From the NCBI RefSeq assembly GCF_001194135.2, contig NC_068981.1, positions 21,800,787 to 21,864,786 of the forward strand: a stretch of DNA of 64,000 nucleotides, given 5' to 3'. Under the pieces are notes generated by a model that did not search any database, was not told the DNA's origin, and saw only the letters and a list, made by a program, of their open reading frames with translations. The position numbers and the translations under genes were made by a program. The first letter of the stretch is position 1, and each line of letters begins with the position of its first letter. Source of the stretch: Octopus bimaculoides. Its lineage: Eukaryota. Shown here piece after piece: positions 47,162-60,122 of this stretch.

Positions 47162-47267
47162 TTAAAATGCAATAATTATCCAATTAGTTGTTATCATTAA
47201 GATAAGAAGTAGAGGAGACATTTTCACATTTGGTCCAGCTGCCACCCGGCAATGTAAAAGATGTAAC
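47162..47267 (-). CDS. Tandem GPR158/179-ectodomain-like protein, terminal exon with GPI-signal-like tail
   Basis: Minus strand tttcag|G, phase 2; LHLLHCRVAAGPNVKMSPLLLILMITTNWIIIAF-TAA; AATAAA on minus at 47060-47065. Confidence 0.82.
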
Positions 47268-47323
47268 CTGAAATAAAAATAGTATTTTTGAGATATTGTG
47301 ATGTCACTCCTGAAGTTTTATGC

Positions 47324-47675
47324 AATATTGTGTTGAGTCAAAAGTTTTATACAATATATTGGTAACTTATTTGCCTTATTCATCAAGTTTCCACAAAAGC
47401 AGTCTAGCATTCAAAGTAGGGACCACTGTGTTGCACTGTCTGATTTCACCTTTCTGTTAGTTCTTCAACGTCATGCTAATACCAGTTCTTGTCCTTTGAG
47501 GTGAAGAACTCCTTCACTGAAGCTTCCACCCTCTTTTTGTTGATGAAGTGTTGTGAGTGCAGGAAGTGAACCATGAATCAGAACTTTGAACGCTAGGCTG
47601 CTTTTGTTGTAACTTGATGAATAAAAGAAATAAGTTACCAAAATATTGCAAAACTTTTGACTCAACACAGTATTA
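47324..47675. repeat. Foldback element, about 93-bp arms, in the last intron of the minus gene
   Basis: tgtgttgagtcaaaagtttt...ggtaacttattt...tattcatcaagtt mirrored at 47583-47675. Confidence 0.75.
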
Positions 47676-47859
47676 AAAGAGCAGTTTACGTGCATTTAAT
47701 TTGCATCTCCAAACAAGTCATCATCATATCATATCATATCATCCATATTTCATGCTGGCATGGGTTGGATGGTTTGACAGGGTTTGATAGGTCAGAGGAC
47801 TGCATCAAACTCCAATGTTTGATTTGGTATTGTTCCTATGGTTTCTATGACCAAGGTAG

Positions 47860-48075
47860 AGAGCTGGCAGAAACGTTAGCACGCCGGGTGATAATGCTTA
47901 GCGCTATTCCATCTGCCGTTATGTTCTGAGTTCAAATTCCGCTGAGACCAACTTTACCTTTCATCCTTTCGGGGTCGATTAAATAAGTACCAGTTACGCA
48001 CTGGGGTCGATGTAATCAATTTAATCCCTTGTTTGTCCCCTCTATATTTAGCCCCTTGAAGGCAATAAAGAAATA
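47860..48075 (+). mobile_element. tRNA-derived SINE family C; other copies at 11640-11855(-), 19130-19330, 32030-32470, 46395-46585(-), 48810-49030(-), 60210-60480, 63680-63890(-)
   Basis: gagctggcagaa.cgttagc...gttctgagttcaaattc.gc.gagg...ctttcatcctttcggggtcgat.aa.taagtaccag. Confidence 0.85.
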
Positions 48076-48549
48076 TATGGTTTCTATGACCTTCTTAACT
48101 CCAACCACTTTACAGAATGTACTACGTGTTTGTTTCTTTTTTGTTACTGCCACTAATGAGGTCACTTAGCAGTTTGCAAAACATGACCTCATGACTGGGC
48201 AGAAGGATGTGGTATAAAGGGAAAAGGTTTATGTCAGATGTTGATGGGTAAGAATATGGTAGAGGAAGGCAAACAAGTGTCTTGCTGTATAAAAACTTAA
48301 ATCAATATAATTTTTGTTAGTCTCCCAAAAGTTAACCAATCTAAATATATTAAAAAGTTGTGACATCATAATAATGTTTATTTACTGTAACCGACATCAG
48401 GTTCAGTTCTCATCCCCACTCCTGTTTATTTTGATTATCCAGGCTATAATATAAGAGTTCAAGACTGACTGTTCTTGGGAACCCCTGTGTACCAAATCAG
48501 TCAAAGAATTCAGGCAAAGGGAAAGTTCCAAGATCCAAACATGCAAGTA

Positions 48550-48710
48550 GAGTTTAAAACTATGAGAACTGTAAAAGTAAACCTAGAAGATACACAAACC
48601 CTGGTTAATGAAGAAGAATGCAAAATTCTAGTGCCCTTAAGAAATTGGCCTTGTTTGGTATGCAGAAAAGGTGTCTGTCAGTTCCCTAAAGTATGCATTC
48701 AGTATTAAGT
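48550..48710 (+). mobile_element. Degenerate RTE post-RT fragment
   Basis: VKVNLEDTQTLV...NWPCLVCRKGV resembles the RTE RVN..KT / WPC..CRKGV motif. Confidence 0.5.
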
Positions 48711-56643: not shown

Positions 56644-57830
56644 CTGAAAGATTAGAATAACGTCTTTTAGATATTAGGATATACACAAGTAGACTTACCA
56701 TATTTGATGGCCTATAAGACGCACGACTGCATAGGACGCACCCTAGCCTAGGCTATACTTTTCTAAAATAAAGTTTAATTCCTCCACTTGTATAACTGTA
56801 TGTTATTACCAGTAGGTGGAAGCGCAATGGCCCAGTGGTTAGGACAGCGGACTCACAGTTGGAAGATCGCAGTTTCGATTCCCAGACCGGGCGTTGTGGG
56901 TGTTTATTCGAATGAAAACACCTAAAGCTCCACGAGGCTCCAGCAGGGGATGGTGGCGAACCCTACTGTACTCTTTCACCACAACTTTCTCTCACTCTTA
57001 CTTCCTGTTTCTGTTGTGCCTGTAATTAAAAGCACCCACTACACTCTCAGAGTGGTTGGCGTTAGGAATGGCATCCAGCTGTAGAAAGTCTGCCAAATCA
57101 GGTTGGAGCCTGGTGTAGCCATCTGGTCCTCAGTCAAATTGTCCAAAGCGGACGTTAAACGATGATGATGATGATGATGATGAGGTCACTGCCTGGAATC
57201 AAACTTGAAATCTTGGGATTAGTAGCCCGTGCTCTTAACCACTACGCTATATGCCAATAGTAGAAAGGATTATTATTATTATTATTAAGGCAGTGAGCTG
57301 GTAGAATCCTTAACATGCTGGACAAAATGCTTAGTGGTATTTTGTCTGTATGTATGTATGCATGTGTGTATACCCTTGTCTTGACACTATGCAATGGTTG
57401 TTAACAAGTATCATCATTCAGTTAAAAGCATGTCTGGCCATGGGAAAATATTACCTTGCTTGGAAACAGATGAGTGTTCCTGACAAGAAGTGAGGGCATC
57501 CAGCTATCCAGCTGTAGAGAATCTGCCATTACAAATTCTATCTCACCCATGCAAATATGGTAAAGTGAACATTAAATTTTGATGACAATGACAACACTGA
57601 TGATGATGATGATGATGATGATGATGATGATGATGATGATGATTATGATTATGATGATGATGATGATGATGATGATGATGATGATGATGATGACATTTTT
57701 GGAGATGAGAATTAAAATTGGTACACCCAAGTAATAAGTAGTGGTATGAACCAAAGGTACAGTAATGCAACGTGGGTATGGCAGTCTAAGATAAACATTA
57801 TATATAACAGTACTCCCAGTATTATTATAC

Positions 57831-57957
57831 CTTCGTTGTTGGTTTACATCTGTCAATTCCAGCAAGATAATTTGGTAAAGGATTTCCAATGCTTATAGGA
57901 CAGGCATTAAAATCAATTTTTCGAAAGTATGTATCCATGGTAACCAATGCAACTATT
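57831..57957 (-). CDS. Minus-gene exon: module 1 DFNAC segment
   Basis: ttccag|A ... AAG|gtataa; 127 nt, phase 2-0; IVALVTMDTYFRKIDFNACPISIGNPLPNYLAGIDRCKPTTK. Confidence 0.88.
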
Positions 57958-58006
57958 CTGGAAAAAATAAAATAAAAAACAATAAAAATATAAACACATA
58001 CACATA

Positions 58007-58203
58007 CCGTTGCTAGTACCGCCTAACTGGCCTTCGTAGGATTTTCGAGCGAGATCGTTGCCAGTGCCCCTGGACTGGCTCTTGTGCGGGCGGCACATAA
58101 AATACACCATTTTGAGCGTGGCCGTTGCCAGTACCACCTGACTGGCCTTCGTAGGATTTTCGAGCGAGATCGTTGCCAGTGCCCCTGGACTGGCTCTTGT
58201 GCG
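58007..58203 (+). repeat. 115-bp tandem repeat running into an about 970-nt gap
   Basis: Units start at 58007 and 58122; the sequence is the internal segment of SINE family A. Confidence 0.75.
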
Positions 58204-59776
58204 NNNNNNNNNNNNNNNNNNNNNNNNNNNNNNNNNNNNNNNNNNNNNNNNNNNNNNNNNNNNNNNNNNNNNNNNNNNNNNNNNNNNNNNNNNNNNNNNN
58301 NNNNNNNNNNNNNNNNNNNNNNNNNNNNNNNNNNNNNNNNNNNNNNNNNNNNNNNNNNNNNNNNNNNNNNNNNNNNNNNNNNNNNNNNNNNNNNNNNNNN
58401 NNNNNNNNNNNNNNNNNNNNNNNNNNNNNNNNNNNNNNNNNNNNNNNNNNNNNNNNNNNNNNNNNNNNNNNNNNNNNNNNNNNNNNNNNNNNNNNNNNNN
58501 NNNNNNNNNNNNNNNNNNNNNNNNNNNNNNNNNNNNNNNNNNNNNNNNNNNNNNNNNNNNNNNNNNNNNNNNNNNNNNNNNNNNNNNNNNNNNNNNNNNN
58601 NNNNNNNNNNNNNNNNNNNNNNNNNNNNNNNNNNNNNNNNNNNNNNNNNNNNNNNNNNNNNNNNNNNNNNNNNNNNNNNNNNNNNNNNNNNNNNNNNNNN
58701 NNNNNNNNNNNNNNNNNNNNNNNNNNNNNNNNNNNNNNNNNNNNNNNNNNNNNNNNNNNNNNNNNNNNNNNNNNNNNNNNNNNNNNNNNNNNNNNNNNNN
58801 NNNNNNNNNNNNNNNNNNNNNNNNNNNNNNNNNNNNNNNNNNNNNNNNNNNNNNNNNNNNNNNNNNNNNNNNNNNNNNNNNNNNNNNNNNNNNNNNNNNN
58901 NNNNNNNNNNNNNNNNNNNNNNNNNNNNNNNNNNNNNNNNNNNNNNNNNNNNNNNNNNNNNNNNNNNNNNNNNNNNNNNNNNNNNNNNNNNNNNNNNNNN
59001 NNNNNNNNNNNNNNNNNNNNNNNNNNNNNNNNNNNNNNNNNNNNNNNNNNNNNNNNNNNNNNNNNNNNNNNNNNNNNNNNNNNNNNNNNNNNNNNNNNNN
59101 NNNNNNNNNNNNNNNNNNNNNNNNNNNNNNNNNNNNNNNNNNNNNNNNNNNNNNNNNNNNNNNNNNNNNNNNAGTCCCACTGCGTGGCACCTTGGGCAAG
59201 TGTTTCTGTTATAGCCTCGGGCCAACCAAAGCCTTGTGAGTGGATTTGGTAGACGGAAACTGAAAGAAGCCTGTCATATATATGTATATGTATATGTATA
59301 TATATATGTGTGTGTGTGTTTGTGTGTCTGTGTTTGTCCCCCCAACATCGCTTGACAATCGATGGTGGTGTGTTTACATCCCCGTAACTTAGTGGTTCGG
59401 CAAAAGAGACTGATAGAATAAGTACTAGGCTTACAAAGAATAAGTCCTGGGGCCGATTTGCTCGACTAAAGGCGGTGCTCCAGCATGGCCACAGTCAAAT
59501 GACTGAAACAAGTAAAGAGAGTATATATATACACACACACATGATAGACTTCCACATAGCTTACATCTACTAAATTCATTCACAACATTCACAAAGCATT
59601 GATTAGTACAGGGCTATAGTAGAAAACACTTGCTCAAGATGCCACACAGTAGGACTGAACCAAAAACAACCATGTTGCACCTATAAAAATATAAATTGAA
59701 TATAAAAAGCAGAATATAAATACAATATTAAACAACCCAAACTTTTATGAAAATATTTAACCTTCTGTTTTATTAC

Positions 59777-60122
59777 CTTGGTCTCCTCATATGTGTGAGA
59801 CGTGAATATCTTGGCATGAAATCTATCACAGGTGAGACAGCAGAAACTATCCATTCATTTGACTTTCCGCAGTCAAAATATGGCTGAGTAAATTTCACAG
59901 GAAGTATTTCATTCTTGGAATGCTGACCAGGAACGCTTGGTCCAAAGAAAACTGAAATATGAAAATGTTCACTGTCGAACTGTCCAGGTCTGCTTGAATA
60001 TTTTATACCCACAGCATATTTATATTTTATCAAAGAATCCTTTGCACTGTACACATCTGGCATATCCCATAAAGAGTACCAAATATTTGTTTTACTCCAT
60101 CTCTTTGTATAATTGTTGGGAC
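59777..60122 (-). CDS. Minus-gene exon: C-terminal half of the Cache-like domain of module 1
   Basis: ttctag|GT ... AG|gtaata; 346 nt, phase 1-2; VKFTQPYFDCGKSNEWIVSAVSPV matches the PYFDC...W.I strand of GPR158-type ectodomains. Upstream exons not found in the window. Confidence 0.88.

Follow-up and report, generated by a model that had tools for sequence, protein, structure and literature searches.

GPR158 and GPR179 are G protein-coupled receptors (GPCRs) of class C from vertebrates. Among animal GPCRs, GPR158/mGlyR and GPR179 are, to our knowledge, alone in sensing through a Cache domain. Their ectodomains are obligate homodimers (PMC11437087). Here, we describe the gene LOC106878076 of Octopus bimaculoides, most of which lies in a 64,000-nucleotide stretch of contig NC_068981.1 (positions 21,800,787 to 21,864,786 of the forward strand; hereafter the window), and whose product carries an ectodomain of this type twice in one chain and has no seven-transmembrane (7TM) part. 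The GPR158/179-type Cache-EGF ectodomain is known; the receptor-less tandem family to which the octopus protein belongs is old, conserved and unstudied.

As in GPR158 and GPR179, an EGF-like cysteine-rich domain comes after the Cache-like domain in each module of the octopus protein, and Pfam family PF22572 matches both modules. The two receptors are also its best PDB matches by both sequence and structure; the receptors are dimers, and the octopus protein has its two modules in one chain. Compared with them, the octopus protein lacks the 7TM part, the cysteine-rich stalk after the EGF-like domain and the RGS7-binding cytoplasmic tail, and it differs further by its tandem duplication, a furin-type linker and a glycosylphosphatidylinositol (GPI)-type end. 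Only about 100 residues can be aligned with the vertebrate receptors by sequence. The closest receptor relatives are instead the metabotropic glycine receptor-like GPCRs of the CG31760 type from insects, hemichordates, echinoderms and molluscs, the ectodomains of which align with module 2 over approximately 300 residues at 28-30% identity (E down to 3e-31) and have PYFDCG in common with module 1. However, these receptors have a PF00003 7TM domain and a single ectodomain.

The alpha2-delta and CACHD1 proteins are similar by analogy only, in their tandem extracellular Cache-type domains, their cleavage into two chains and their auxiliary, non-signalling role. Features of this kind, including the binding of amino acids by some of these proteins, are the subject of three papers (PMC9901441, PMC3112168, PMC6231325), one of which disputes the reported GPI anchor of alpha2-delta (PMC3112168). 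In contrast to these proteins, the octopus product gives no VWA or dCache_1 match in Pfam, its Foldseek match to alpha2-delta is not significant (E >0.09), and homology between the two does not extend past the Cache superfamily. The double-Cache (dCache/PDC) sensors of bacterial chemoreceptors and histidine kinases belong to the same fold class (Foldseek, 3lic at 4.5e-07 and PctD 7prq at 1.8e-04; Pfam model MCP-like_PDC_1, PF22673, for bacterial PDC/Cache sensors, E=9.5e-07), but are periplasmic sensors placed between two transmembrane helices, share only 10-17% identity and have no EGF-like domain.

Gene model and tandem modules

The window consists of AT-rich eukaryotic DNA with 16 runs of N. 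On its minus strand, from 60122 to 47162, seven in-frame exons totalling 1850 nt encode 615 residues and correspond to coding exons 2-8 of LOC106878076 (Table 1). The exons show AG acceptors, each preceded by a polypyrimidine tract, as well as GT donors, their phases are compatible, and the last one ends in TAA; at exon 5, the donor AC/GTAAGT keeps the frame and yields the length of 1850 nt and 615 residues. The product is an exact substring (residues 207-821) of the 821-residue O. bimaculoides protein XP_014782655.1, labeled 'uncharacterized protein', and LOC106878076 is a real gene that had already been annotated as uncharacterized. The original prediction, which was made from the DNA sequence, had proposed seven in-frame exons of this total length, and we recovered seven exons of exactly that length with consistent boundaries and phases. 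All the motifs it quoted are also present, with the strand corrected to minus. Regarding its extent, the seven exons are real, whereas the gene is not whole in the window: coding exon 1 (residues 1-206), with the putative signal peptide and the N-terminal half of module 1, lies outside. In Octopus sinensis, whose orthologue XP_029641233.1 aligns to the 615-residue product gap-free at 91% identity, this exon is found approximately 3 kb upstream of exon 2; at 60123-64000 of the window, tblastn gave no match to it and the stretch is made up of repeats. Two predicted isoform X2 models (P0243 and P0240; 619 and 627 residues) start at an internal methionine just before or in coding exon 2 and thus lack half of Cache domain 1 as well as the putative signal peptide; these shorter models are probably prediction artefacts and not functional products.

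The protein is laid out as an N-terminal hydrophobic leader, module 1, a linker ending in RHRR, module 2 and a 27-residue tail. Pfam PF22572, the GPR158/179 extracellular domain, matched two stretches of it (E=2.2e-42), and weak matches to EGF models occurred at both CxC motifs. Sequence searches of the PDB returned GPR179 and GPR158 only (5e-10 to 1e-8, and 3e-17 with the family profile). We then modeled the O. sinensis orthologue with AlphaFold2, using a 40-sequence family alignment as input, and obtained a mean predicted local distance difference test score (pLDDT) of 85 and a predicted template modeling score (pTM) of 0.85, with disorder confined to residues 1-10 and 424-453. When the model was compared with the PDB by Foldseek, GPR179 ranked first (8irj, 7e-12; 8d1b, 1e-09), followed by the bacterial double-PDC sensor 3lic, GPR158 (7ewp, 1e-06) and bacterial dCache chemoreceptor domains. 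Hence, the two modules of GPR158/179 type and their Cache-like structure, both of which had been proposed from the sequence, are supported by the double PF22572 match, the PDB matches and the Foldseek ranking. The EGF-like content had been given as a single domain; it is present, yet there are two such domains, each Cache-like domain having its own.

Several features speak to the relationship between the modules. Their last 124 residues are 30% identical (E=1e-16), and two intron positions are shared, one in phase 2 after RRPR in module 1 and VKFT in module 2 (59777/57957 and 52923/50857) and one in phase 0 after TTK and STK (57831/56643 and 50743/49724), meaning that the internal duplication either copied a gene segment that was already split or that the introns predate the duplication. 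The 40-sequence alignment contains 16 conserved cysteine columns, eight per module and at equivalent places, all of which are occupied in the octopus protein; 15 of them are encoded in the window, the first cysteine of module 1 being outside. The eight cysteines of each module would fit one Cache pair plus the six-cysteine EGF pattern C1-C3, C2-C4, C5-C6. With respect to the GPCR ectodomains, only the last ~145 residues of module 1 align, compared with homology along the entire length of module 2; likewise, the GPCR representatives found in a library-wide hidden Markov model (HMM) search matched the module-2 half of the profile.

The absence of a receptor part was apparent from several lines of evidence. 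A tblastn search of the 64-kb window with four 7TM-bearing relatives returned ectodomain exons only (exon 5 at E ~1e-7) and no 7TM match, and the idea of a hidden receptor was rejected on this result; a Pfam scan of the 615-residue product likewise detected no 7tm_3 domain. According to precomputed Pfam annotation, PF00003 is absent from the 88 best of 92 homologues and present in the four weakest, which are true GPCRs; the orthologues were retrieved at E=0, and these homologues, together with the Pfam and PDB matches, speak against a chance resemblance. The cytoplasmic region that recruits RGS7-Gbeta5 is absent as well, as the protein ends 27 residues past the last EGF cysteine, in a hydrophobic stretch. 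The next gene in O. sinensis lies 8.6 kb downstream in convergent orientation and encodes a 2235-residue VWA/Sushi/HYR/EGF/pentraxin (SVEP1-like) protein. The claim that the protein has no 7TM part thus held against the tblastn search of the window, the Pfam annotation of the 88 homologues and the orientation of this downstream neighbour. Because the 7TM part is missing, we do not count the protein as a member of the GPCR family.

The original prediction had named two findings that would overturn it. One, a structure that is not Cache-like, is answered by the Foldseek matches above; in the other, transcripts skip the 47267 exon and splice to 7TM exons hidden elsewhere. This splicing scenario is contradicted by the models from three octopuses, since the 47267-47162 exon is the last one in the RefSeq models from O. 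bimaculoides and O. sinensis, in the model deposited for O. vulgaris and in the shorter isoforms, and by a candidate AATAAA signal past the stop codon. Moreover, the three assembly gaps inside the gene are all intronic and the 22-kb O. sinensis locus, which contains no N, carries these eight coding exons in unchanged order, so that the gaps conceal nothing coding. We also considered and rejected two tandem genes instead of one: the exon 4-exon 5 junction is in frame, module 2 has neither a signal peptide nor a start context, and every orthologue and >70 homologues are single two-module proteins.

Conservation of the tail, the linker and the family

The protein ends in LHCR-VAAG-PNVKMSP-LLLILMITTNWIIIAF-stop, with the 27-residue tail directly following the sixth and last EGF cysteine. 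The same ending was found in homologues from molluscs, annelids, brachiopod, nemerteans, flatworms, rotifers, mite, shrimps, copepod and nematomorph. We scored 77 distinct family tails, counted after the conserved x-Cys-Arg, by four criteria of our own. The length was 22-36 residues (median 27) in 75/77, at least two of the first five residues were G, A or S in 74/77, a 12-residue window with a mean Kyte-Doolittle value of at least 1.8 was present in 73/77, and no more than eight residues followed that hydrophobic window in 70/77; all four features were combined in 65/77, and most of the others came close. Such a layout strongly suggests a GPI-attachment signal and not a transmembrane anchor flanked by cytoplasmic residues. 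On inspection as well as by the heuristic, the tail noticed in the octopus sequence resembles a GPI signal in layout (small residues from omega to omega+2, a spacer of 5-10 residues and a hydrophobic end of 12-20 residues that is followed by no cytoplasmic part), and this layout is conserved across phyla.

The linker between the modules is approximately 35 residues long in octopus, basic and disordered, and residues 424-453 of the orthologue model, just before the RHRR motif (residues 452-455), have a pLDDT below 50. In the family, the linker varies from 57 to 258 residues and is not conserved. A motif of the R-x-K/R-R type is nevertheless found at the equivalent place, some 25-30 residues before the first module-2 cysteine, in 36/40 aligned members, the site being retained by most spiralians, and several spiralian linkers contain multiple dibasic sites. 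Judged by its sequence, the motif is a putative proprotein-convertase site, in which case the mature spiralian protein would consist of two chains.

The product of LOC106878076 belongs to a conserved, protostome-wide family of the same layout. The library-wide HMM search returned 185 representatives at E <=1e-30, and all those identified as being of the two-module or module-1 type were from protostomes, namely molluscs, annelids, a brachiopod, nemerteans, flatworms, rotifers and an orthonectid, as well as shrimps, a copepod, a mite, a tick, a tardigrade and a nematomorph; matches from insects, hemichordates and echinoderms were 7TM receptors. These results suggest that the family is absent from deuterostomes, insects and nematodes, groups that were not surveyed systematically. 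A search with the N-terminal half of module 1 gave 5 matches among 49 candidates, which was uninformative on distribution. Octopus has three paralogues, of which LOC106882646 shares the 199.9-Mb chromosome record of the gene in the window and LOC106873574 lies on another. One deposited paralogue model (P0005) stops one exon before the GPI-type tail. Database labels of family members read either 'uncharacterized' or 'GPR158/179 extracellular domain-containing protein', and our literature searches found no published description of a 7TM-less GPR158-like protein or family, in agreement with the original description of the protein as functionally uncharacterised.

The Cache-EGF sensor module thus exists without a 7TM part, tandem-duplicated and apparently lipid-anchored, in most protostome phyla, and the family marks the evolutionary point at which this module was uncoupled from the receptor. 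Its members occur in parasites (schistosomes, liver flukes, scabies mites and ticks) and in neurobiological models (octopus, Aplysia and Lymnaea).

Proposed mechanism and alternatives

Given the layout as a whole, we consider it probable that the protein is a secretory, convertase-cut and GPI-anchored pseudo-dimer that acts by binding only. The protein would enter the secretory pathway, a furin-type convertase would cut between the modules, and the tail would be swapped for a GPI anchor, which would place the EGF domain of module 2 on the outer leaflet, much as the EGF domain of the GPCRs sits above the 7TM part. The two modules would then pack as a single-chain counterpart of the GPR158/179 ectodomain homodimer. 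A fixed packing is suggested by the pTM of 0.85 over 821 residues, because two independently oriented bodies of ~390 residues would give a value of about 0.5, and, as the ectodomains of GPR158 and GPR179 are homodimeric, a tandem pair in one chain could plausibly replace the dimer. Because it has no transducing part, the protein would act by binding, either to a small ligand in the Cache pocket or to a partner at the cell surface or in the extracellular matrix, or to both kinds of target. For a signalling partner in cis or in trans, it might serve as a co-receptor or auxiliary subunit, or else as a tethered sink.

A candidate pocket is that of module 1, which retains the invariant aspartate of PYFDC and a second aspartate on the VTMD strand. 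With the register taken from the PDB alignments to GPR158 and GPR179, module 1 has an aspartate aligned with mGlyR E271 (the PYFDC aspartate) in 40/40 aligned members and one aligned with D307 in 36/40, while the residue of module 2 aligned with E271 is an arginine or lysine in 30/40. E271 and D307 reportedly contact the amino group of glycine in mGlyR. If they do, module 1 would keep an amine-binding pocket and module 2 would not. A more specific version appears improbable to us and is offered as a tentative idea: the protein could mimic the class C Cache-ectodomain dimer in a single, lipid-anchored chain and serve as a ligand-binding auxiliary subunit, a protostome equivalent of alpha2-delta in its logic and not by descent, with module 1 binding an amino acid or amine through its invariant aspartates, module 2, as the GPCR-like half whose pocket is remodelled, docking on a CG31760-type mGlyR-like receptor or a channel, and dibasic cleavage arming or releasing the complex.

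If the proposed mechanism is true, the protein would provide a natural single-chain ectodomain dimer for structural and ligand studies, and, for invertebrate nervous systems, the family would supply candidate co-receptors or auxiliary subunits of a new class. It would also be a surface-exposed protein of several parasite groups that was not found in vertebrates in these searches.

A number of points limit the proposed mechanism. The N-terminus of XP_014782655.1, MSIRYKFFGSASLLTLYSLLLIIGTIRLSQSS, resembles a signal peptide by eye and is encoded outside the window. The dibasic motif is absent from the mite, shrimp, copepod, tardigrade and orthonectid members (the nematomorph has one), and cleavage is therefore not essential to the family. 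The proposed geometry of the pseudo-dimer derives from the pTM, and the tail criteria are a heuristic. Concerning the pocket, the literature examined yielded S172 as the only residue and described no such roles for E271 and D307. Furthermore, the N-terminal half of the Cache pocket (the mGlyR S172/R173 region) is not alignable by sequence; indeed, both the family profile and an invertebrate GPCR ectodomain align with the PDB entries only from GPR158 residue 262-264 on. Lastly, a homologue from the cuttlefish Acanthosepion pharaonis (P0003) continues for ~50 residues beyond the hydrophobic segment (…LYLLYRPPKKNKP…), an extension that would make it a single-pass membrane protein; this may be a transmembrane variant or a gene-model read-through.

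Among the alternatives to an anchored pseudo-dimer, the functional form could be mainly soluble, in that cleavage at the convertase site, at the anchor or at both sets free one module or the two of them as a secreted decoy or as part of the matrix, with tethering to the membrane no more than a transit state. The conserved dibasic site between the modules and the multiple dibasic sites in several spiralian linkers are consistent with such a release, and no inter-module disulfide is expected because all eight cysteines per module would fit intramodule pairs. Against this, the cut chains could stay together through the tight module-module interface that the high pTM implies, and even lineages lacking the dibasic site conserve the GPI-type tail, which argues that tethering itself is under selection. 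We therefore regard a mainly soluble form as unlikely.

The hydrophobic end could also be a permanent transmembrane anchor, which would leave the product as a type I protein practically devoid of a cytoplasmic tail. This would be in line with the cuttlefish homologue, where RPPKKNKP and about 50 further residues follow the hydrophobic segment, and with some members in which the hydrophobic stretch comprises 20-25 uncharged residues. The octopus stretch is, however, 16 residues long, interrupted by TTN and protein-terminal, which is short for a bilayer span, and it has no basic stop-transfer flank. The narrow length range of nearly all family tails, their start with small residues in 74 cases and the few residues beyond the hydrophobic core in 70 likewise argue against a membrane span, and we find a permanent transmembrane anchor quite unlikely. 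The remaining alternative, namely that the gene model is an incomplete or mis-joined version of a GPR158-type GPCR, or of two tandem genes, with 7TM exons in gaps or beyond the window, could draw on the three assembly gaps within the gene and on exon phases that also permit module-wise splicing, but is highly improbable in view of the gap-free O. sinensis locus, where these eight exons and no others code for this protein, the lack of 7tm_3-like sequence across 64 kb, the same end shared by ~80 homologues from many phyla (transcript-derived assemblies included), the convergent gene downstream and the candidate AATAAA after the stop.

Feature coordinates and neighbourhood

Table 1. Positions in the 64,000-nt window of the LOC106878076 exons, sequence motifs, assembly gaps and neighbouring elements.
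Feature	Position	Strand	Content	Support
Coding exon 2 (of 8)	59777..60122	-	C-terminal half of Cache-like domain 1; PYFDC 59883-59869	AG/GT; tblastn 100% to XP_014782655.1 residues 206-321
Assembly gap	58204..59172		Intron between coding exons 2 and 3
Coding exon 3	57831..57957	-	Last Cache-1 strand and start of EGF-like/cysteine-rich region 1 (IVALVTMD...CKPTTK)	Splice sites, tblastn
Coding exon 4	56478..56643	-	EGF-like domain 1 (CKHVSGYGFKRGGYKCVCKQGYKYP) to last module-1 cysteine; EGF-like pattern at 56628	Weak EGF_CA/hEGF matches, residues 151-180
Assembly gap	54829..54999		Intron between coding exons 4 and 5
Coding exon 5	52923..53757	-	Basic linker, RHRR and most of Cache-like domain 2; PTYRC 53020-53006	XP_014782655.1 residues 417-697
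RHRR, putative furin/proprotein-convertase-type site (R-x-K/R-R)	53648..53659	-	C-terminal end of linker, ~26 residues before first module-2 cysteine
Assembly gap	51117..51510		Intron between coding exons 5 and 6
Coding exon 6	50743..50857	-	Last Cache-2 strand and start of EGF-like region 2 (GIVLVDIDLKFLDINQC...PSTK)	Within PF22572, residues 455-551
Coding exon 7	49570..49724	-	EGF-like domain 2 (CSPLTGFGFSLGNYACKCKQGYEYP) and helix after it; EGF-like pattern at 49709	Motif, Pfam, tblastn
Coding exon 8, terminal	47162..47267	-	LHLLHCR and tail; TAA 47164-47162	100% to XP_014782655.1 residues 787-821
Putative GPI-attachment-type signal VAAGPNVKMSPLLLILMITTNWIIIAF	47165..47245	-	VAAG at 47245; small residues (candidate omega AAG), 7-residue spacer, 16-residue hydrophobic end, nothing after
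Candidate polyadenylation signal AATAAA	47060..47065	-	96 nt past stop codon	Sequence motif only
Retroelement fragment	42457..42852	-	131-residue open reading frame, reverse transcriptase	RVT_1, E=7e-12
Exons of convergent neighbour	6047..38271	+	EGF-like exons and proline-rich terminal open reading frame
Open reading frames of neighbour	6047..6430, 21338..21700, 27491..27859, 37591..38271	+		Pfam EGF matches two
Open reading frame	18770..19138	+	Reverse transcriptase-like FVPGRST motif	No Pfam match
Repeated ~50-residue reading	59277..59465, 55391..55561, 24170..24772, 19770..19940, others	Both

A convergent neighbour, at the position that the SVEP1-like gene occupies in O. sinensis, is represented on the window's plus strand by EGF-like exons and a terminal open reading frame rich in proline. 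A retroelement fragment with a reverse transcriptase match lies between the two genes, and a further open reading frame on the plus strand contains a reverse transcriptase-like motif (Table 1). In addition, a reading of about 50 residues (…PGLILCKPSTYSI.LFC.T.KL.G.K.T.I.CQAM…) recurs on both strands, often beside assembly gaps and CA/TA microsatellites, and has the appearance of a dispersed repeat of the short interspersed nuclear element (SINE) type that breaks the assembly.

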